Source: Takakia lepidozioides
Lineage: Eukaryota; Plantae; Bryophyta
Assembly (NCBI GenBank): GCA_030704615.1
Contig: CM060731.1
Span: forward strand, 51,212,001 to 51,276,000
Reading direction: 5' to 3'
DNA: 64,000 nucleotides
The translations under genes were made by a program, and so were the position numbers. The notes below the pieces were generated by a model that searched no databases, was not told the DNA's origin, and saw only the letters and a program-made list of their open reading frames with translations. Positions 35,882 to 64,000 of this stretch are shown here, piece by piece (position 1 is the stretch's first letter; the number at the start of each line of letters is the position of its first letter).

Positions 35882-36925
35882 CCGAATGAGTTTGATGAAT
35901 GGGTAAAGAATCTAGAGGCAAGGGTGGATGCTGCGAAGGTTATTTCACGAATTAGACATCTCCAAATTTGAAGTTACATGTACAATGTCCCCATGTGATT
36001 TCATTTTTTGTTCATTTTCTTCTGATGCGATGATTTGTTGTTGAATATTCTATATTAACCTAAGCTTCTCACTAACTTGTTTATTTGGGGTTTCACCTTT
36101 TACCAGAATGAGCCTCAACGACCACTTGACGAAGTGCAAAGTGTCCCGAAAAGAGTACTGATTGTATTTGACCTGAATGGTGTGCTTTGCTACACTGAGA
36201 GATTTGAGGATAGTGGTCACCACACGAAGGAAAATTCCAAGGCGAAAAAGGATTTCAGATATTCCCTAGTTATTGGCAATATGACATTGGTATACCGACG
36301 CGAGCGCTATGATAAATTATGGCGTTCTCTGAGTGATTCCTTCGATCTAGCTATCTGGAGTTGTATGATGCCCCAGAACCTCATGCCAATTGTCAAGAGG
36401 TTTTTTGAAGGTTTGCCACAACCTATTTTTGTTATGTCGCAGGACAATTGCATTGTTTGTCCAACCAATATTGCTCCCAAAAACTTCAACGCAGCAAAAA
36501 GTTCTACAGAATCTTCTCGCCCCTTTTTTCTGAAGCCTCTTAGGAGAGTGTGGGACAAATATGATGAGGAAAATACTCTCCTTGTTGATGATAGCCCATA
36601 CAAGTGTGTCATCAATCCCGTGGGATCATGCATTTATCCTCCACCCTTCGAAACATTTGCAAAGGACAAATGTTTGCTTAGAAAGCTTGAGAATTACCTC
36701 CTTGGATTGTTGGAAGCTCCGTCTGTGGCGAAATATGATGAGATGAACAGGTTCGGGGATCCACATGAAAATTTGGACGATCCAAAGTTTCGGAGACTTC
36801 TGGCGTATCTTCAAATACAAACGAAAAAAATGATACTATTAATTATGGTGTTCCGAGACCAGACTATTGATAAATATAATGATCAATCGATCAATTTGAT
36901 ACGTTCGGACCTAAGGTCGAAGTAG
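35882..36925 (+). pseudogene. 3' part of the interrupted gene: FCP1/NIF-type HAD phosphatase-like domain
   Basis: Exon 35882-35938, GT-AG intron 35939-36106, then LIVFDLNGVL...LAIWSCMMPQN...FFLKPLRRVW...NTLLVDDSPYKCVINP. Confidence 0.8.
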
Positions 36926-41814: not shown

Positions 41815-43822
41815 CTAATCATCTTCATCTAGATTTATTACTTCGTTATCATCATCTCCAGATGTTGATGAAGATGCTGCGGGTGTAGAGGACGTGCCTC
41901 CACCTGTACGGAGAGCTCGAGCCTGGGCTCGAGTGGTCAAAGAGGGACCCAGTGTTGTGTGGTCCACCCTTGCCATCATGCGTAGCGTTCTAGGCGAGTG
42001 CTGATTCTCTTTCACATTTGCCAGAGCTGGGTGTGTCGCTCTTGCTACGGCTTCATGCAATTTTTCAATTAAATCCGATATGTTTGGAAGTGGCAAGAAC
42101 ACCCCTGGAATAGGGGCAACTTGGTCACGCCATGTGTTCTGCCAATACTTTACAGCACTCGTGATGGCAGCCTTGAAATTGTCCAACACCTCCTCCTGCT
42201 GGGGGTCTCTGCGCAACTCTGGAAGAAATGGCCCTTCATCCCGACGAGGCACCCAGTACGTCTCATTCATATCCTCCCAACGGATGCTAGCGGCCTCCAA
42301 CTCCCTCAGAAATAGGTCTCTCCCAATCGGTTCACGATTGTATGGGTCGTTTTCCACTGGCACCCACGGATCCTCAGGCAATCGGAAGAATCTTTGTCTG
42401 GTACAGCTCCAATGCCCTCCCAAGTTCCGGCAAAAAAGCTCCCTTTGGACTGGGTCCCGTATGCCTCTAGCACACACGGTTATTTCCCAGTTGGATGTCA
42501 CCCAAAAGGTCACCGGATCTTTAACCCTAGTTAACGTCTTCGCATCCAAGGCGTGCATCTCTCTTGGAGCATCCCATGTCATTGTCTCCCCCCAGTGCTG
42601 CCAATTTAAAATATCGTAAGGCGATACATCCAATGGCATGTTGTACCGGTTGTACTCGTATCCCGTTGGCATATTGTCTTGCAACCCAAACAACTCGTAG
42701 AAACGTCGATGGATTGGTCCACGACAGTCAGGGCATTGGCTGGCTCGCATGGCTGCCGATATGAGACATGCGGGATGGAACAAATGGCCACATGAACCAA
42801 GCATATAGCCTCCCTCCGGTCCATAAGGGTTTAGGTACGTTGTGCACACCGTACCATCTGTTACCCATGACGCTGGATTGCTCTGTGGTATCCACGTCCG
42901 TTTATCCTCATGAATGTAGGATAACATCCTCGGCCTGGTGTCCTACTCCTCCTCTACTTCCAAATCCAAGTTTATGCTGTTATTGGTATCGGAAATTGTA
43001 TGCACATAGTGCTCAAACATGGCATCCACATCAGCCCATGTGGTGAATCCAGTGTACTTTGACGTGAATACATCACGCACAGTGTCGTGCCTTTACAAAT
43101 TAGCATAGATGCTATCTACACTTTGATTCGACAAACGTGCTGCACGTTGGAGGGATGACAACGTTTCTTCTATCCGTGTTTCCCGCGATGCTAGATGGTC
43201 AGACATTTGCACTTCATTCCCATGCCCGATTGAGTCAACCCCGTCGATGACGCGGTCAATGTCCATTGGTGGCATATTCAAACGCGCAAATATGTCTTGC
43301 TCGTTGGTGATTGGCCTCGGGTCCTGAAGCACACCGCGTACGTTGTCGAGAGTCCCCAACCCCATTCTTTCCAGCAACTTCGCTATTTGCCACCGTTGCA
43401 AATGAACAATGTCCTGCAGGTCTTTGATGTGCTATTCATGTGCGGCCAACTATTCCTCCAACGAAAAGCGTACCTCGCCCCCCTCCACCTCAGACGTTTA
43501 AGGCCCGGCTGCGGAAACCTGTTGCAGCATATAATCTGGAGGTTGGTCTGCATTTCCTCCTTCTTCCACATCGTCGTTTCCATCCGCCTTTCCTCCTTCT
43601 TCCACCTCGTCGTTTCCATCGAACCATATGATATCCTGCCCCTGACGTATATACAAGTCTGGGATATCAGAGAACATGTATAGTCTAGTACGCTGTCTCG
43701 CAGTGGCAGTTTGCCAATCCACTGGTCGTAATAGAATCAATTCTGTGTACAACATGGCCGCAAATAAATACGGGACCTTGTTGTTGACGAGCGGTTGACC
43801 CCACAATGTTGTATGTACCTCC
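41815..43822 (-). pseudogene. Intronless RING-finger protein gene with in-frame stops, 5' end interrupted by copy C
   Basis: CTTYLNPYGPEGGYMLGSCGHLFHPACL..CPDC (RING-H2-like, second Cys replaced); ORF pieces 43498-43806, 43093-43401 and 41815-42927 are in one frame. Confidence 0.72.
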
Positions 43823-50773: not shown

Positions 50774-52403
50774 GAGGGTAGCTACCATGTGAGCAGTTCA
50801 CGTGAGCACGTTCACGCTTTAAGTGGTAAACGAGAGCAGAATCCCTTAAGCGTGAGCAGATTCCAAGCGTGAGCAGAATGAGAGCCTACAACCAAGGGAA
50901 GAAGATGGCCTATTGCCGTGGACAAAACTACACTGCACTGACGCAATCTCCACCCCATCCGACGGAAGAGTCCTTGCTGGGTGACGACCATATGGTACGA
51001 ATGTGCGATGAAAAGCTGCCGGATAAATGGTTTTGAGATGAATGAAAACAGGAATGGATGAATGTTGGATGACTCTTGGATGAAAAATGAGCGACATGAA
51101 TGAACCATGGTGCGTGTGCAGGTGCTCGGGATTAAGGTGTCGTCAACGACATCTTAATTCCCAGTATGAGTTGGCACATGACAGCTTACGAAAAAACCAA
51201 AATCCCCGAATTGTTTTTCCCAAAAACATTAACCAAAAAAATTTCAACCCAAAAAACTTTCAAGGCGAAGAAGCCTTGGCGGTAAGGCGGTGTGTGTGCA
51301 GGTGGTGGGGATTAAGGTGTCGTCAACGATATCTTAATTCCCAGCAAGTTTTTATTATTATTTATTATTTATTATTTATTTTATTATTATTTAATTTCTC
51401 CCCCCCCCCCCCCCCAATGTGCCAGATTAAGGTGTCGTCAACGTCATCTTAATTCTCAGTCCGAGTTGGCACATGACAATTCATGGAAAAACCAAAAACC
51501 CCAAAAAAAATCACCTAAAAAATTTCAACTCAAAAAAAATCTGATGACGAACAGCCTTGGCGGTAAAGCGGTGTGTGTGCAGGTGCTGGGGATTAAGGTG
51601 TCGTCAACGACATCTTAATTCCCAGTACAAGGTGGCACATGACAATTCATGGAAAAACCAAAAACCCCAAAAAAATTCACCCAAAAAATTTCAAACCACA
51701 AAAATCTGATGGCGAACAAGCCTTGGTGGTAAGGCGGTATGTGTGCAGGTGCTGGGGATTAAGATGTCGTCAACGACATCTTTATTCCCAGTACGAGTTG
51801 GCATATGACAATTCATGGAAAAATCAAAAACCCCAAAAACTTTCACCCAAAAATATCTGATGGCGAACAAGCCTTGGCGGTAAGGCGGTGTGTGTGCAGG
51901 TGCTTGGGATTAAGGTGTCGTCAACGACATCTTAATTCCCAGTACGTGTTTTGAAATGTTTATTTATAAAGCACGAGTTCACCTCTCTGCCTTCTTTATA
52001 TTTGGGTGTGAGCATTTCTCTCAACCTTGAATACCTGGAAAAATGACAAGTAACCCCTCCTCAATCCACAAAGCAATGTGGATTCATTGTTGGCAATATA
52101 CACTGCACTTTCACAATTGATGACTAGCATGGTTTAAAGGATTTCGGAGCTCGGGGATTTCGGAGCTACTACTACAAAACAACTTTGTATTATTTCATTC
52201 ATCCATCATCATACAAACATTCATCCGCCATTCATCCCTCATTCATCCCAGTAGCATCCATATACTGGCCACTATGTGTAGTAATAGGTCTTCTAAGTCG
52301 AGTAGGCCCCTGCGGTTATAGGTGGGTAGATCCTGAAGCGTGAGCAAATTTTTGCTCACGGTTTTTTCTGCTCACGGGATCTGCTCACAAAATAGCATCC
52401 CCC
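50774..52403. mobile_element. Non-autonomous TIR element (MULE-like) inserted in the PPR fragment
   Basis: Imperfect TIRs gagggtagctaccatgtgagcag / ctgctcacaaaatagcatccccc, subterminal cgtgagca repeats, 9-bp TSD-like agcctcgat/ggcctcgac; PPR reading resumes across it (YAQQGRGVEA-LETYEQM). Confidence 0.65.
51110..51945. repeat. ~150-180-bp tandem repeat with internal hairpin gggattaaggtgtcgtcaacgacatcttaattccc
   Basis: Six hairpin copies at ~51128, 51308, 51425, 51588, 51755 and 51906. Confidence 0.9.
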
Positions 52404-52860: not shown

Positions 52861-54282
52861 GGTAGACTTTTGTGCCCGAAAATCCGGCAGCATCAACATT
52901 TTGCCAAGTTCATTTACGGAGGGGTGCTAGTGAGCTTTCAACAACATTCATGCTGGTCGCTTTGGGCTCCATTGGACTCTCCACAACGAGGACATACGAA
53001 CATGTCCAAATGTTAAACCAGCTTATGTCTGCAGTGTGGAGATTTTGGAGTGGTCTTTGAAAACGAGCAAGAGCATCTGAGCAGCGCCAGTCTTGTTTGG
53101 GCTTACTCCCCAAACACGATTTTTGAAAGAGGGCATGATGTATGCTTGGGATGCCATGTAGCATGGGGAGGATGAAGGCATGCAGGGGGGATGGAGGGCG
53201 ATGCCATGCATGAGGGCATGTCTCATATCCTGGCAGCGGGAACATGAGGCCCGGGAGGGCGTGCTGCGTGGCAGCAGCCTTGCGGTGTACAGGCGTTGGA
53301 GGGGGGTGGGCGTGGGGGTCCACGCTGGCGGAACCGGGCCCCTCGCATTCAACTCCAGGGCCCACCTAATGCTTGGCAAACGGTATATACCCTGGTTACA
53401 GGGGCGACGGTATTTTTTACAAGGATTGGTTCGCTGACACTCCACGGTTGGGACGGTACGAGACACGACAGAGATAGCCCCATAGCCTCGAGGGAGGCCT
53501 GCCGCTCGATCACAATCTGGGCGTGTTGACCGAGGACATCATATTTCATTAACTCACAAATAACTCACAAATGTAATGTAGGGTGGTTGGGGGTCCCGGC
53601 ATAATTAAAGTGCCGGGTGGGAGGTAGATTTGAGGCGGACCCCGCAGCAAATCTGCCGGGGTGAGCCAATCATGGAGCAAGATGCGCGACATTTTTGGGC
53701 TCCGCGCCGTTAGAATGCCGTGTGGGGGCAAGTGCCGTGGCACTGTGGAGATGCTTTTAGTCAAACGTTATATAGCCTGGTTATAGGGGTGAAGGTATTT
53801 TTTACAAGGACGGTTAGGTTGGCACCGTGGAGATGCTCTTAGTCAAACGTTATATAGCCTAGTTACAAGGGTGAAGATATTTTTTACAAGGACGTCTCCG
53901 TTGACACTCCACGATTGGGACGGTAGCAGACCCCACACATACCCAATCACAACTTGGCGGGAAGCGCTCTCCCAATCTTGGAGTGTTGAAATAACCTTGG
54001 AGTGGTGAAATGCCTATCTATAGAGGGCGCAATTGATGGCTGGGTTGGCTTGCTCGTGCAAATGTAATGTACATGGTTGGTGGGGTCCCTTTATGCCTGA
54101 CGTAAAGAATTTAAAAAAAAACTCCTTTGTATTTCGAGTGGGCTTATTTCGTGGAGTAAAGTGCGAGGCCTATCGAATAGCGTTATGGAGTGTAAGCCAC
54201 TCGCACTCTGTAACGCTACTCGCCAGCCTGGCAAGGCACTTTTTTTTTTCAATTCTTTATGCAAGGTAAACAACCCACGTGT

Positions 54283-54373
54283 TGCTTCACAGGTGTGAGC
54301 CCCTTGCCATGTGGGCGGAGGCCCCGCCCCTCGGGCTCCGCCCACGTGGCAAGGGGCTCACACCTGTGAAGCA
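54283..54373. repeat. 38-bp inverted repeat with a 15-nt loop
   Basis: tgcttcacaggtgtgagccccttgccatgtgggcggag ... ctccgcccacgtggcaaggggctcacacctgtgaagca (1 mismatch). Confidence 0.9.
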
Positions 54374-57214
54374 CCTCGCCTGGGTTGCTTATCCTACACA
54401 AAAGTAAGAGGTAAAGCCCTGCCCCGGGACTTTCCTGGATTTGAGGCGCCTGTCCCAGGGCGGAGCCCCAGGGCAAGGGTCCGTAATCTAGGAAAGTCCA
54501 AGGGCGAGGGCTCCACCTTTCGTTAAAAACGAAACTGCCCGTTTTCGAGACTGCCCGTTTCTCCACTGCGTTGCCACTACGGTTTCATTGTCACGTCATT
54601 GTAGCTCGCTGCCCAAGTTTGAAAAACGTCTGCCCAATATTAAGAATAATAGATCCATAAAATATGCCAGCCTGCTGGGGGACAAATTCCATAATCTGGG
54701 ATTACAGCCCCCCTCCCGGGGCAAAAACCTGTAATCAAGTGCGAGGGAAAATTCATGTCAGGGAAGCCCTAATTTTAACAAAGCCAAAAAATCTGAAGGT
54801 TTTTACGTGTCCCGACGCAGATTTGCTCCGGGACGGAAGCATCTAAAGTTGAATGACCTACTGTAGTGTGAAAACGCCTCTCCTTCTAAAATGAGAGGCG
54901 TGTGAAAACTTGGGTGACGAAGGGTGTCATAATGCAAATGTATGAAAATTTTGGATGAGCAACTATGTTCGTCAGCGCACATTTTTGGCACGCAGGCTCA
55001 GAGTGAGTGAAGAAGCTTTGAAAATGAATCTTCTCGAGCTCGGAATGAGTGCCTTGCAGCTGACATTCGTACATCGATTCTGCTCAGGAGTCAGATCTGC
55101 TCCGGGAGTGCATTTCGATGGCGTGTGTTTATGTGAAGGGTGATGACCCTTAGTAATAATTTGGGTGTACATTGTAGTGGCAGCTACCCGCAAACGGCGG
55201 AAAGTCCGCGGGCAGGAACTTTCCGCTGCGTAAAAATTTGCTCACCTGGTTCCACACTCTGACTAGCTGGCTTCACATCCAAATGATATGTCATCCAAGG
55301 GACAAGATTGCGTTCCACTAATCTCCCTCTGGCAAACCACCCGTTCCATGCTACCGCCCCCAAATGGCACGACTGGTTCATGCCACTTGTGCATCCTGGG
55401 GAGTTCTGCTTCAAAATGCCCAAAGGAAAATCTAGAGCAGGTTTTTACGATTCACTGACGGAGGTATCATGGAAAACTGAAGCAGGTACGATGACATCGG
55501 AGCGGCGGCTGGTATGGACTATTTAGGCCGGGATAGAGAAGGGTAAGACAGACTTTGGGAGAGTGAAGAAGGAAGGTGGAAGATCCATAAGTTTGTGGAA
55601 ACAGGTCCCTGACAAGATCATTATAGTGTATGGTAGATCTTGTTCGATCAACGCATTGCTAGAACAGGACAGACGAGTGTCTCTCATTGTTCTCTCTCAC
55701 CCTCATCAGTAAAGTTGTGTGTGGTAGACTTGATAGTCGTAATATACCAAGTCTGCAAGGGAGGCCGGTCATTGGTTGGAGGACCATGGCAGCTATGATC
55801 AGTTGCAGTGGTACTGGCCGGTTGAAGTTAGGGGACGTTGCAACTAGGGTTTTATTGCACCGGGACGACCGTAGCCTTCAGAAACAACAACACACCAGAT
55901 TGGGACCGGTTTACATCGCGAAGCGCACTTGCCGATCTCATGTAAGAAACTACACCATACAAATTGATCATACAAAATACTATATAACATATTTCGAGTG
56001 ATATATCGGTGCCCTGCTAGGTCGAAGGTCAGTAGTGAGTAACCATTTATATCTGATGGATCCTATCGTAGGAAATGCTTGTTGATGTTACAAAGACAAG
56101 CACTGCAAATTTGTTTATCAATACCGTCACTCGTACTAATGCTGTTTGCCCGCGATGCAGCCACTTGAAAATTCATCTGTTTGTAAGAGGGCCTTAGTGC
56201 AGTAGCAGGAGACCCTTACTCACTTGACCACAACCAACCCAAGAGGCATATCGTTTTCCACCTTAATGTTCTTATGGTCATGTTCTGCGTTAAACAGGTC
56301 AATAAAGATATGTGTTACACAAGATTAACTAGAAGAGTTTTGAACTGGATTCTCAGTTCCATTATAATCTAGGTAACAGGTGTCTTTCAGAACTTGACCA
56401 TCGAATTGGGATGGTTAAGTACGTAGCTCTGATATTATTGTCCAATTCCACAAATGAATTTGTGATATATTGTAAGCTTCTCACAGTCTCTGATCTCTAG
56501 AACAGTGACAGATGTTGAGAGCGAGGTCCTGAGTCTGCCATTGACTATCTTGTTGTTCGGATTTCGCCCGTCCTTTCATTGCAAACGAGATTGCGTTCTT
56601 CTTTATAATTAGTCTACTTGGGGACGCATACGACGCCTATTTTGACATAGCCACAACGGCCTGGGGTGGCTTATAAATCTAGCAGTTGGACTTCACTCAA
56701 TAATGAAATTGCGTACTCGTCTCAAACGATATTGTTACTGGAGCAGCCATAGTACAGAACGAACCTGAGAGGAATAGTATATCAGGCCGAGATCAAGACA
56801 AGACGGCTGTAATTTGAAGTCTGAGGACTACAACACATTCTCTCACCAAGTCACTTGAAACCCCAAAAATATATAACAAATTTATGTGTCATGGCTTTTC
56901 GCTCTCATTGCTCCATGGTATATGGTAAAATCTCAAATTTGTCTCAAGATTTCATAACTCTGATCACCGCTTGACATAACGCTTGATCACCTCCTCGGGT
57001 TGACCTTGCTTCAGCCGGTTTTAGTGGCTTGTAACAACACTTCTTTACAAGTGCATTTACTTCAGGATTGGATAACTTTCTTCTTGCCCCCCAAACAAGG
57101 GACAGCTCCAAGGGATTCAGAGCAAGTGGGATTTATGGAATGCTCGTGTGTGTATTGTAGAAGCGGACTTGTCAAAAGACGATCCGAGCAGGTCTGAAGG
57201 ACGAACCTTTTGAG

Positions 57215-60045
57215 ATGCACTCTATGAATCCTATACTGCTGCCTGGCGAGGGAGGTGATCCCTTACCATCTGCACGGAAGACATTACTCAGGGAGGTAAG
57301 CACAGGAGGCGCCATCGGGCCGATACTGGAAGAGGACCACCCCATAGCAGCTATGGCCAAGCTTGTACAAAAGGAGATGAAGATAATCTACTTGGCATCA
57401 TGCTATGACATACCTTGTGCGTTGATGCCCTTTTGGTGTGGTGGCATCAACATGCTAGCAATGCAACCCCACATGCAGGGGTAAGTCCACAAGACTTTTG
57501 TGGTTTTGAAAGCACATTGCGTGTTTAAGAGACTTAGCGTACGTGATCTACAATTAGAAAGAGGTGTCCTTGATGTAACTACGGGATACGTCTTAGTCTG
57601 TATCTTAATATACACGTTATACCTTGGAGGTAATATCTGCAGCTGGAGCTCATCGAGCCTTGCAGATGTCACGGAAGCTGGTGCTTACAATATAGAAGTA
57701 CAAGGGAACTGCACAAGCATACTGGGAAGTACTGGACCATTCGGGCATATAAAATCCTGTGGCACTTGGTGATCATATTTATGCAGTGGGGTACTCCGGA
57801 AATTTCATAGCGTATAGTGATAGTCCTGACAGCTGCAAGTGCATAGTGATGATGAGAGCACAGAAGGTCGCCATATTTCTCTTCCGTCACTAAAAGGGTA
57901 GTGAGACCACTCCAAGGCTTTCGACTGCATCCTTGGTAACATCATCCTCTCACATAATGCTTCGTTTGTGGACAGATTAGATCAACAATTTTGGATTCAT
58001 GCTGCAGAAACGTTTGGTAAGGAAGTTTTATATTCGTGGCTGTACGTCTACACCTTCAATCTTGCCAATCAGTACGTTGGTGGACCGGATGACCTGATCG
58101 ACAAGCCATGGCGTCCCGTCGCTTCGGGTTTAATTTCTCGGGAAGGGTGTCTCAGTCGCTACATCTTGGTCAACTTACTCTTCAGCTTTGTAGGCTGGCA
58201 TGTAAGAATTCTCATCAAATTATTAGAGAGAAGGTTTCTATGCGAATCTCTTTACTAGCATATAGGGAGATCCTGAAGTCGTCTCCATTTATCGGAAAAG
58301 CTCGCTGATATTTCTCGTGAAGCCAGATCAGTTTAAAATAGTTTAAGCCTTCACACTAACTAGATTATAAAGGCAATTTATTGTTTCCTCAACTGAGTAA
58401 GTGTCTAGGCATAGTAGCATCTTTTAATTTTAGGAGTGCCTACATCTAGAATTTTTTTCCAATGAATGAAGAATCTAACCGCTAAAAATATACTGAGTCT
58501 GCAAGATATCATCTGGTAATGGATTGTCTACTATATACTGAATGTTCAGCTGTTTCAGTGGTCGTGACAGTAACAACCCGGGTTGTGGTCGCGTGCTTGC
58601 GTCAGATGGGAGTGCTGCATTGGACATTGCTGTGGCAGGGAATAGTCCTTTGGGGCCTTCTAGGCCTGCAGGAGGGGAATTCCTCAGGTGTGGGGAAAAG
58701 TTTTGCAATGTGGATGGGCGCTATCACACAAACCAGTGTGTCTATAAGTATTGCAAATCCTCTGACAGGTACACTACCAAGAGGCCCTGCCAAGATTTCC
58801 CGACTGTTATGTTTGGCGTTATGCCCAAATGCAATGGGTACATGGATTAGTCACAGTACCTAGTACCTGGGGTAATGAATGAATGAAAGAAAAGCTCGCG
58901 ATCACCTTGTACAGTCTAAACTTTCGCTTACTCGCTTCGCCTTGGGGGGGTCCATGTCGTAGAGCGGTCCCTGAAGATCTAGTCGTGCACATCTCCTGTT
59001 CCAAACAATTCTAAATGTGCAAAAGTTTAAACCAATCAGCTCATAGTATCATTTGTACAGACTTTATATCTTCTTACAGTTGATAAATGTGGGAACAGAC
59101 AAGTTGTTGTGGTGGGCACTTGCAAAAGCAGCCCAAGCTGGAAACCAACATTGGCTCCAGGTCAGTGTTTCCTGCAACAGCTAGCCCTACGACTGTCTTG
59201 AGTAATAATGACTTAAAGCTAGCATGGACAAGGAGAAATGACTAATGTTTTTTTGGGATGGATATAGGACTTCAGAGACGTGGCTGGTGATACCAAAACT
59301 GGAAGAAGAACGTTTCCAGTGATATTTGGAGATGATCTAGCTCGGAAAATATTGGCATTCATATTTCTCATGGATCCGCTGTTCACACACTATGTTCTCA
59401 TGAAGGACTCTTCATACTCTACTCCACAACTTATCTGCGAAGCTATCGGTGCCATCCTGTCTGGCTGTCTGGCTTACCGGTACAGACATCTCCATATTCT
59501 CTGTGTGAATTATAGAATGAACCCTTGTAGAGCGGATTTGAGTTCTTTTCGATTCTAATCCGACAGGCTCCCCAACTGCCCCTGTGGGTTTCCATTATCT
59601 ATCACCGCCCGCGTTGGACGAGAAGTGAAGCAAGCTGGCGGGTCTCAGTAGGCATTCACATCAGTTATGTCCTGAAATATGTTAAAGCTGATATAATCTT
59701 TTGTTGCACCAGGGTCTCAGAGAAAGTGAGGTGGTAGTCTGACATAACCAGAATGTAATCTTGATGATAAGAAGATCTCTTTCGGTCAGTTTTAGTTTAA
59801 CTGGTTGCAGCAGAGCTCTATCACTAAATGAATTTTCGATTCACATAACATTGTTCAACATTATTACCTGCGTTGACACTCACATGCAAGTATTGACATA
59901 CAGTCATATGATGTATTGGCCGACATTGGACTGCAGAATCCTGAGCTACAGGACTGCAAAAGAGGACCACATTACGTACGATACTTGGTTTGCCCTATTT
60001 TGGTACAACTTCAGCTTTTTGACCCTGCCTGGGTTTCTTCTCTAG
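57215..60045 (+). CDS. UbiA-superfamily membrane protein, probable UbiA-type terpene cyclase (~345 aa; exons 57215-57480, 57976-58201, 58606-58768, 59099-59160, 59268-59479, 59937-60045)
   Basis: Phase-consistent GT-AG introns, 1038-nt CDS with no internal stop; YVYTFNLANQYVGGPDDLIDKPWRPVASG, QDFRDVAGDTKTGRRTFP, EDHITY; hydrophobic helices. The exon 4 acceptor and the start codon are the least certain parts. Confidence 0.82.
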
Positions 60046-62293
60046 CTTCAGTAGCAGACAACCGGAGCTCTCACGGATTCAACTCAAGGAAGCAAGTCTA
60101 CAATTGTTTGATATACCAGTGAGACAGTACTGTCCAGATGAATATATCAGTAAGCTAGTGAGCATTGCATTTGTTAGTTACTGCAGGTGACTACGCTGAA
60201 CGAATCATTAGCGACGGAGTCACCAAGAGCGACGACTACGTGCTACTGCCACGTCACCACTGCTTTCCCTCTTTCATATAAGTGTCCATACATGCAGTAT
60301 TGTTTTACAGTGTTGTTGTATTGCTCCTCCGATATATGAGCGCTAGATGCTAGTGTGTGTGTGCCTAGATGTGCATGCTCTGATTACGTTGTTGGTAGAA
60401 AATCAGCAAGCATACTAGTATACTAGGGAACAGTCTCGGAACATTAAGAACTCCGATTAGCATAAGTTGATTTATACAGAGTGTACGCCTAACTACTCAT
60501 AAAGACTAAGATAAGAGTTAGCTACAATCACTTTGGTACGCATAATGTTTCAATGTACAGACTGGCCTAAAACGCGTTATCTACCTGTATACTAGGAGAT
60601 CATAAATAAAGGTGTGTATTTTCTACACCTCCTCTCACACCTTATTTATCCTATATACATTAGTCTAATGAAATGAGTTGAGCTGACTCCTAAAGATTGG
60701 CACTTCTGATTTCTAAATGGTCTCTCATCTCTTCAAACCTTGTGCGCCCTAAGGGTTTCCTAAGGAAATCAGCTAACTGCTCTCGAGTGGAAATATGATA
60801 TAAATCCACTTCTTTGTTCACTATCCTCTCTCGAATGTACCGACTGTAGTGTGAATGCACGGGAGTGACATTAAAATTTTTGTTACTTGCTCAGCTTCCG
60901 CATTTCTAGAAGAGAGGGGCTATGATACCGGTGAGAAGGAAGTTGAGCTATCCCTGTGATTTTATTTCATCCATTGAATGGACGGATTTTTTCCCTGATT
61001 TATCATCCCAACGATGGCGGAGTTCATCCATACTTGCCAGGTTATTTCAAGAGTTGAGAAAAGGATTTTCGCATGGATGGAAATAGGTAAGCTATGAAAC
61101 AATGGATTTTTCATCCGACGGATGAATGAAGTTCATCCATGTTCTAGGAACATCATGGGAACATTGGAGAACGTTTGGCCAGGATATAGCCCAAGTGCCT
61201 GCAATTTTTCATCCATCAGATGAACGAGGTTCATCCATGATTTTTAGTGCTGCAGATCGTGGAAATTAGGGCCTGTCAAGTGTGAAGAATTCATGACGAA
61301 CGGCTGAAACGGAAGTGAAAGATTTTTGCCATAGAGTAATGTATCATGTCCTTTCGGGTGCGCCCACATGGAGTGACAATGGTGAATGAGACCTGATGGC
61401 GGTAGAAACGGGGGATGAGCCTCACCGTTAGACCTTTACCGCTTGAGTAAGGGTATAAAGCACCCAAGTACGATGGTCTTCTTCTTCTTTCACTTAGGAA
61501 TAGTTGTTGTTGCTTTGATTTAGGAGCTCTCAAGCAAGACTGATGTAGGAGATAAGATTTTGAGAAATGGAATGGAGACCTGTGGCTTGACTTCAAACCA
61601 GGGGGATATTGATTAGAGGCCAGATGCAGCCCCACTATAGTCATTGAGTGTATGATGTTTCTTTTGCTTTAGATCATGTGTTTCCAGTAGCATGAATCTG
61701 GACCCAATGTTCTGTATCTGGTCCTGCTGGATGTGTTGCCTTGGTGTAATTGCACAACATGTAGGAAGGGTGCAGTGTTCTACATGATACCCAGAGAATA
61801 TTTTGTCATGCAAGGGTGAGAAAAGAAATCTAGAAAAAAAAAGAGCTGCACAGAAAAAGGAAGAACGAAAGGATAACCAGTTGTAAGCTAAGAGATAAAA
61901 ATGGAGAAGCTTCCTAGTCCCATCCATGTTTTCTCTTCCGCTGCTGTATGGATGATGGCATCTGGTCTCTGGTCATGAACAGTAAAGGGTCAATGATTGA
62001 GGATAGTGATTTAGGTAGCAAATTTGTCTTCACTAGGGTGTAGTGGCTGGGGCAGCAAGCCTCTTTGCACTACAAACCAAATTTAGATTTTACAAAAGGG
62101 ATTCATGCCCTTCTTTTTTCACACTACAGATAATGAACCTCTATATGTTTAGTCTTAGCATGGAACACTGGATTGTTAGCAATCTTAAGACTACTTTGAT
62201 TATCACAAAATATAGATGAAATCACTTAACCGAGATGGGAATTTGATAACTCTACCTGATCGCATTGGTTCTGATTGCCTTGGTTGAAGGATG

Positions 62294-64000
62294 TGTCGTG
62301 CACATACATATCGCTACACAACTACATCGCTGTCCAAAACCACACAACACATGTGCACGCCACACACTAGTATATCACTAGTCCACCACTAGTCCAACCA
62401 CTAGGCTACAACTAGTCAGTCACTAGGCTGCCACTATGCTGCCCACTATGGCAGTCACTAGTCCACACAATCGCCCCCCTAGCTGGTGCTTAGGTCCCTC
62501 TAAGTCCAGGTAGCCACAAGATGTGATAGTGACCATAGCCTCACTAAGTCCTCCACCACTATCCCTACTACACTCAAACTCGATAGATCAAGAGGCCAGG
62601 TGCAAGAGTTGCCCCATCATTAGTCGCCGTCTTGCAACCTGTGAACTTGAGCTTAGGATCTCATGTATTGACTCCTATGAACTTGGCCTCCCATGTCTTG
62701 TTAGCTGCCTCCAGTCATGTCCACTGCCACTATCCCAAGCAGTGTGGACACAACCAATCTCCGTCAGGAACCTTCTCAAGAGGTGGAGTCAAGCATCCCA
62801 TATGCCAACCCCTTGAGCATCGATCACACACCAGCATGGTGGCTGCCCCTTTGGCAGACCCACAAAGCATGCACCTCAAACCTGCAGGTACCACTGCCAA
62901 GTTTGGATCAACTCTGCCATCGACATTGGGAAGGTGACATGGCGCACAATTACGCACATGGTCCTTCCAAGTCATGCCATCCTGACCCTCCAAGATCAGG
63001 ACCCCTGAGGGCAACACCTCTCGAACCCTCAGAATAACACGCCCTGTAGTAACATCCAGAGTCGTAGGAGCAGTCTGCTGCAAATAAACATAGTCACCAG
63101 GGCTAAACCTCCAAACCCCATGACGATATCCTCCACCACGTATAGTGGCATACCTCAACGTATCACGGTGCTGTGCAATGGCAAGGTTCTCAAAAGCCAT
63201 GGGCATGACTTTCTTGAACAACTCTGCACGCTGATCACATGCACGTACCCATACGTCCGGATTGTCAAGGTTAAGGACTTGAGCAGTGTCCATACGAATG
63301 GCTGCAGGCAAATCCGGCTTTCGGCCAAATAGAAGGAAATATGGTGAGAATGAGGCAAGTGATGCTTGTTTGCTGAACCTGTAGCCCATGGCTAACCAAG
63401 GAACCTAAAGATCCCAATCTCCTAGGTATCCCTTCTGCAAGCCATACTTGCGCAAACCCCTCTTCACCGTCTGAACAACTCTCTCTGCCAAGCCATCGGC
63501 CTCAGGATGATCCCGAGAAGTGGTGCGGTGGTCTATCAAGGCTTTATCACACAAAGCCTGAAACTCCCCCAAGAACTCTTTCCCGTGGTCCGTGAGTACC
63601 TCAGCTGGAGCACCAAATCGACTAAGCACACGATCCAAGAATGCATACGCAGCCCCCTCACTAGCCTTGTCAGACAATGGAACCAACTCAATCCACTTGG
63701 AGAAGTGCTCCACCATCACCAACACATATCTGTGGTGGCGCATAGTCGGTGGCAACGGTCCTGCGAAGTCAAGACTCCACCTGTAGCCCAATCCCATGAT
63801 TGGTAAAGGATGCAACTGTGGTATAGGGGCGTTGAATGAAGCACCCACCCTGTCACACACCATGCACCTAGCCATGAACTGTTGCACCTCTGTATGCATA
63901 CCACGCCATAAATACTGCCCCTGTAGTAAACTGTGAGTGCATCGCACTCCAAAATGCCCCAACTCCTCATGGGCATGCCGCACTAACCGTGCACGCTGTG
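62294..64000 (-). mobile_element. Ty3/Gypsy retrotransposon 3' end with PHD-finger integrase and a short (~176-bp) LTR
   Basis: Integrase core, PPT agggggcgat (62470-62480), LTR tgtgtggactag...gtgcacgaca (62469 to 62294). Confidence 0.8.
62730..64000 (-). pseudogene. Integrase (HHCC, DDE) with C-terminal PHD finger; stop at 63405
   Basis: HEELGHFG..CMVC, WSLDFAGP, LTDHGKEF, DGLAERVVQT; CMLC..LVCDRCSRGWHMGCLTPPLEKVPDGDWLCPHC (C4HC3). Confidence 0.88.

Follow-up and report, generated by a model that had tools for sequence, protein, structure and literature searches.

An expressed, multi-copy plant gene for a predicted UbiA-type terpene synthase of likely microbial descent

Does a land plant carry an expressed gene for a terpene synthase of the UbiA type and, if so, where did the gene come from? 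The question is raised by a locus in the 64-kb stretch of DNA analysed here (the window), which a sequence-only reading had taken to encode a microbial-type membrane terpene cyclase, acquired by a non-seed plant and then intronised. UbiA-type terpene synthases have been described in bacteria and fungi (PMC9835599), and also in a sponge (PMC13483135) and in red algae (bioRxiv 10.64898/2026.10.28.762581). Their published marks are NxxxG/AxxxD (motif I) and QDxxDxxxD (motif II) (PMC9835599), with NQxxG/AxxED as a stricter definition of motif I (PMC13483135).

Firstly, the gene model was compared with transcript data. The six exons originally proposed, with a product of about 345 aa, are separated by GT..AG introns, hold no internal stops and give 345 codons followed by TAG at 60045. 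Sequencing runs were counted as RNA by inference, not by label. In two such RNA-like runs, from different studies, there are exon-only contigs from which exactly 495, 404, 330, 107 and 457 nt are skipped, and one 2.2-kb RNA-like contig covers all five joints; none of the five is present in a DNA run. The acceptor at 59099, which had been singled out for checking, is confirmed, since the RNA-like contigs of both studies splice exactly there. An alternative acceptor at 59080 is stronger-looking and would shift the frame; it was rejected in favour of the site that the contigs use.

The original start, ATG 57215, is internal. The frame is open up to an acceptor at 57161, and the match to the 2.2-kb contig begins there, not at 57215, with 533 more letters upstream. 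The last 30 of these map uniquely to 55912-55941 and are followed in the window by GT, which adds one more GT..AG intron (1219 nt) to the five. An ATG with a good context at 55786 opens a frame that runs without a stop across this joint. The full coding model (Table 1) has seven exons and about 415 aa, with ATG 55786 as the presumed start; there may be another exon upstream of exon 1. Full-length liverwort-type proteins are 444-452 aa long and have a basic, unconserved N-terminus followed by a conserved extension. The longer model is supported because that extension matches exon 2. The exons, phase, stop and splicing of the earlier model therefore stand, but exon 1 had been missed and the protein is correspondingly longer.

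Table 1. Features of the UbiA-type gene and of its surroundings. Positions are those of the window.
Feature	Position	Strand	Description
Open reading frame	36077-36925	+	282 aa, open; NIF/FCP1-like phosphatase domain, E 4.5e-11; probably transposon-carried
Open reading frame	41815-42927	-	370 aa, intronless, open; RING finger; probably transposon-carried
Tandem repeat	51092-52004		Six units of ~150-180 nt each, several with a near-perfect 35-nt palindrome
Inverted repeat	54278-54378		46 nt, 91% complementary, 9-nt loop; ~1.4 kb upstream of the start codon
Exon 1	55786-55941	+	52 aa; directly matched part 55912-55941; frame and GT donor; putative start ATG
Intron 1	55942-57160	+	1219 nt, GT..AG, phase 0
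Exon 2	57161-57480	+	106 aa; RNA-like coverage from 57161; contains ATG 57215; liverwort-specific N-terminal extension and start of first membrane helix
Exon 3	57976-58201	+	75 aa; motif I and KPWRP; Pfam UbiA E 9e-5; RNA joints
Motif I, NQYVGGPDD	58067-58093	+	Exon 3
KPWRP	58103-58117	+	Exon 3
Exon 4	58606-58768	+	54 aa; GVGKS, equivalent of microbial WxxKN
Exon 5	59099-59160	+	62 nt; last residue is Gln of motif II; acceptor RNA-confirmed
Motif II, QDFRDVAGD	59158-59160 joined to 59268-59291	+	Divided after Gln by intron 5; joint RNA-confirmed
Exon 6	59268-59479	+	70 aa; DFRDVAGD (59268-59291) and GRRTFP; Pfam UbiA E 1e-4
Exon 7, coding part	59937-60045	+	DHITY at 59965-59979; TAG stop
3' UTR	60046-60500	+	Transcript to at least 60500, probably ~60630; contig pieces
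Copia-like remnant	60600-60860	-	RNase H C-terminal remnant, then polypurine tract (60628-60639); LTR start 60627
Integrase fusion	62730-63389	-	C-terminal part of integrase fused to PHD finger

Copies about 90% alike to the window gene, with introns in common, are present in the DNA run, and paralogous transcripts occur in one RNA-like run. The window gene is intact, spliced, transcribed and multi-copy. That it is a contaminant from a fungus or bacterium, or that it is non-functional, is highly improbable: the RNA nature of the runs is only guessed, but the gene has six spliceosomal introns and surroundings rich in gypsy/copia elements, two studies gave contigs of exons alone, its paralogues have the same introns, and its orthologues lie on megabase contigs of the liverwort Calypogeia. 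The host is probably a non-seed plant, as had been proposed, and the nearest kin of the gene are liverwort proteins. It had also been described as the only undamaged cellular gene in the window; intact it is, but two other reading frames are open (Table 1). The 3' UTR appears to cross the antisense LTR that has its start at 60627.

Homology searches were made with the window gene exon by exon, and Calypogeia-type proteins represented the window protein in the trees and the structure model. Exon 3 as query gave 126 matches in a set of 1.8 billion cluster representatives; the two highest, about 63% identical, are a Calypogeia fissa protein and a transcript contig. Further protein searches added a second transcript contig and several paralogues from C. 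fissa. Apart from Calypogeia, these protein searches, which need shared 5-residue words and therefore could miss distant plant members, found no named plant or green alga with a member of the family. In every core exon the liverwort proteins scored best, followed by members of the microbial clade; among the latter, bacterial proteins are closer kin than fungal ones. The C. fissa proteins (CAM6099353.1, CAM6092244.1 and paralogues) are about 60% identical to the window protein in the core exons. Identity to liverwort kin is 59-63% in exon 3 and 57-61% in exon 6, and exon 2 is 30-38% identical to Calypogeia-type proteins. The two plants have in common the N-terminal extension, a C-terminal insertion and multiple copies. 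A JGI metagenome scan with the liverwort alignment gave no match, an Atlas search with the N-terminal extension gave no credible match, and NCBIfam and Pfam gave no domain on exons 1-2.

Three Calypogeia loci were examined, and all have intronless coding regions on megabase contigs. At one of them a P450 gene (L091:6713-8232, minus strand; annotated as 273 aa and possibly partial) stands 1.8 kb from the UbiA-type copy in head-to-head orientation, and the two form a candidate biosynthetic pair. Neither a P450 nor a prenyl synthase was found near the window gene in the 64 kb; likewise, a P450 resembling the Calypogeia neighbour is absent from the window.

Outside the liverworts the matches are 25-35% identical and carry NQxxGxxED, KPxRP, QDxRDxxGD and DHxTY. 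Among the exon 3 matches with readable motifs, all have NQxxGxxED followed by KPxRP, and most also have QDxRDxxGD and DxxTY. The bacterial kin belong to Actinomycetota, Myxococcota, Cyanobacteriota, Chloroflexota and Bacteroidota; the fungal kin are many, some of them annotated as beta-trans-bergamotene synthase. At 29 of the 80 bacterial loci there is a homologue of polyprenyl synthases no more than 4 kb away. On a Streptomyces megaplasmid such a synthase and the UbiA-type gene form a pair between IS elements (L006:6832-8828), so this cassette is mobile in bacteria. Many heterocystous cyanobacteria (Nostoc, Calothrix, Komarekiella and kin, L016-L066) have a UbiA-type cyclase-like protein, and none of these loci has a polyprenyl synthase homologue within 4 kb.

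The four motifs that had been read from the letters (NQYVGGPDD, KPWRP, QDFRDVAGD and DHITY) are all located in exons. The combination of motif I with KPxRP occurs once in the window and in none of 30 shuffles. NQYVGGPDD fits NxxxG/AxxxD, and the residues joined across intron 5 fit QDxxDxxxD. Position 5 of motif I is Gly, where canonical plant UbiA proteins have Asp. Both motifs, together with KPxRP, the C-terminal DxxTY and the UbiA fold, are common to the window protein and the characterised enzymes Fma-TC, EriG and Tps1A/Tps2A (PMC9835599). In Tps1A the motif aspartates are required for cyclisation (PMC9835599).

The canonical plant proteins ChlG, HPT/HST, COQ2 and MenA share with the window protein the Pfam PF01040 fold and an N-terminal presequence, putative in the window protein, but a place among them is not borne out by the scores. 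Models for canonical families (ChlG, MenA, DGGGP synthase and others) gave the liverwort kin and the exons 16-48 bits, far below curated cut-offs of 100-520; the ChlG model gave 28-37 bits against a cut-off of 436, and the HPT model had no similarity to the liverwort proteins at E<0.01. An AlphaFold model of the core of a Calypogeia protein (about 60% identical to the window protein; pLDDT 87) has the UbiA fold, with DGGGP synthase and AfUbiA (6m31, 4tq4) as best matches. The same structural best matches are reported for the red algal UbiA terpene synthases (bioRxiv 10.64898/2026.10.28.762581). On sequence grounds, the window protein is a member of the microbial clade of UbiA-type terpene cyclases, apart from the canonical plant UbiA prenyltransferases; the motifs, the profile scores and the tree with Calypogeia-type stand-ins all agree with the original assignment.

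Three positions have drifted. At position 8 of motif I almost every microbial member has Glu and the Calypogeia-type proteins have Gly or Ala; the window protein has Asp, a conservative change that nevertheless departs from the stricter NQxxG/AxxED. The microbial KN/RN is KS in the window protein and RS in Calypogeia. A Tyr conserved in fungi, presumably the cation-stabilising Tyr155 of Tps1A, aligns to Trp in the window protein, Ser in Calypogeia and His in bacteria, in a gap-dependent alignment made without Tps1A itself. These changes may alter the product or the chemistry.

The main alternative as to function is that a gene of the same origin has taken up new chemistry, as an aromatic prenyltransferase (acting on bibenzyls, for example) or as a prenyl-diphosphate hydrolase giving linear alcohols. 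The drift at these three positions and the long stem of the liverwort-type clade (below) are in keeping with this, and prenyl transfer is the native activity of the UbiA fold. Prenylated aromatics are made by liverworts, and the aromatic prenyltransferases of plants are plastid UbiA proteins. New chemistry is nonetheless a minority reading in our estimate, as the signatures of the cyclase clade (G5 of motif I, QDxxDxxxD and DHxTY) have been kept and the HPT model did not recognise the liverwort proteins. Overall, we give a probability of about two in three that this is an expressed plant gene for a UbiA-type terpene synthase, in a small multi-copy family of microbial and most likely bacterial descent, with the activity itself being a prediction. 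The figure is held at that level mainly because of the three drifted positions.

The origin of the gene was examined with trees of uncharacterised liverwort-type, bacterial and fungal proteins, with E. coli UbiA, MenA and CyoE as the sole outgroup. The liverwort kin fall inside an ingroup with 96% support against the E. coli proteins. The liverwort-type proteins form one clade (100%), which lies within the microbial cyclase clade but in no tree among the fungal proteins, themselves a clade (99-100%); the backbone is weak, and the liverwort-type stem is long, at 1.6-2.0 changes per site. In AU tests, whose values are provisional because the tree searches had not fully converged, a grouping of liverworts with fungi was not rejected (p=0.82 under a mixture model, p=0.41 under LG+G4) and one of liverworts with cyanobacteria was (p=0.017).

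Other markers separate bacteria from fungi. In the window protein and in all five liverwort-type proteins, motif II and DxxTY are 81 residues apart. The spacing is also 81 in 52 of the 75 bacterial proteins (range 79-88), and 72-74 in 42 of the 45 fungal ones. A liverwort profile gave a median score of 121 bits for bacteria and 49 for fungi, although the bacterial set had been picked for closeness to the liverwort clade and its scores are therefore inflated. When the core introns were compared with four fungal genes, four of the five matched no fungal position; the fifth, in phase 1, has a basidiomycete intron of that phase within 1-2 codons, a closeness that could be due to chance (roughly 1 in 10).

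Acquisition from a microbe is likely, and the spacing and profile markers suggest that the donor was probably a bacterium. Gain from a fungus or another eukaryote, as for the fungal-type MTPSLs, would be compatible with cyclase function, and the AU tests and the one neighbouring intron position speak for it. It is unlikely, given that the liverwort-type clade is never nested in the fungi, that spacing and scores are of the bacterial type, that the other four core introns are without fungal counterpart and that the Calypogeia copies have no introns. Distinctly unlikely is an old eukaryotic gene, passed on by vertical descent without recent transfer and lost in most plants. Such a history would accord with the presence of UbiA-type synthases in fungi, a sponge and red algae and with the weak backbone. 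However, the plant and green algal matches in the protein searches are limited to Calypogeia and two transcript contigs, so that the gene would have had to be lost many times; the red algal enzymes have retained the canonical NxxxDxxxD and are therefore probably a separate lineage; and a sister relationship to cyanobacteria, as expected of a gene from the plastid endosymbiont, was rejected in the AU test above.

Later intron gain in the window lineage is plausible, given the intronless coding regions of both bacteria and Calypogeia, and it is simpler than loss, although the Calypogeia copies may have become intronless through retroposition. The distribution in plants is patchy (only liverwort-type matches, in searches of limited sensitivity), and the introns, transcripts and paralogues attest to integration into the host. 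The proposal of microbial acquisition followed by intronisation thus holds as to a likely transfer with bacterial markers; the AU tests do not fix the donor.

By analogy with characterised members of the family, Mg2+ and the diphosphate group of a prenyl diphosphate would be held by the two Asp-rich motifs; ionisation of this substrate would leave an allylic cation, to be cyclised within the membrane cavity. Deprotonation would then yield a terpene hydrocarbon or alcohol, perhaps to be oxidised by P450s. The first 52 aa contain 8 Ser/Thr, 10 Arg/Lys and 3 Asp/Glu and are unconserved, with a similar N-terminus in Calypogeia; this composition weakly suggests an organelle-targeting peptide, most likely for the plastid, within the 115-150 extra N-terminal residues. 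Were the enzyme in the plastid, where GGPP and GPP are available, one of these would be the likelier substrate and di- or monoterpenes the products. Our tentative fuller picture, which we hold at somewhat less than even odds, is of a bacterial membrane cyclase gained by liverworts and fitted with a targeting N-terminus and, in the window lineage, six introns; in the plastid it would make di- or monoterpene skeletons peculiar to liverworts.

Compared to the bacterial and fungal UbiA-type cyclases, to which its product is about 25-30% identical, the window gene is plant nuclear, has six introns and the N-terminal addition, and is altered at Glu8 of motif I, at KN and at the Tyr site. The sponge AcUbiA1 (PMC13483135) and the Laurencia UTSs (bioRxiv 10.64898/2026.10.28.762581) are likewise eukaryotic UbiA-fold terpene synthases that exist beside class I TPSs, in other kingdoms; compared by description only, the sponge enzymes have the motif type of the window protein and the Laurencia enzymes have NxxxDxxxD. 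The MTPSL genes of non-seed plants are also microbe-derived terpene synthases of liverworts with expanded copy number, but the enzymes that they encode are soluble, have the class I alpha fold and show no sequence relationship to the UbiA family.

No report of a UbiA-type terpene synthase from a land plant was found in the literature searched, with most subscription journals lying outside its coverage, and two recent reviews, one on bryophyte terpenoids (2026) and one on gene transfer to plants (2025), make no mention of UbiA enzymes. What appears to be newly seen is a liverwort-type clade of the UbiA-type cyclase family with an added N-terminus and altered active-site positions. The surprise is tempered because the family has just been extended to the sponge and red algae and because microbe-derived terpene synthases are common in liverworts.

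About 1,600 terpenoids are known from liverworts (PMC12890914), and the literature consulted explains them by TPS and MTPSL genes. An expressed and duplicated UbiA-type family would escape the usual searches for terpene synthases, and its members have probably been filed wrongly as housekeeping prenyltransferases. They are cloneable candidates for orphan liverwort skeletons, and the intronless Calypogeia copies, set against the six-intron copy in the window, offer a case study in the domestication of a transferred gene. If the reading as a plastid cyclase is true, these genes would represent a class of land-plant terpene synthase so far unreported, the third after TPS and MTPSL.
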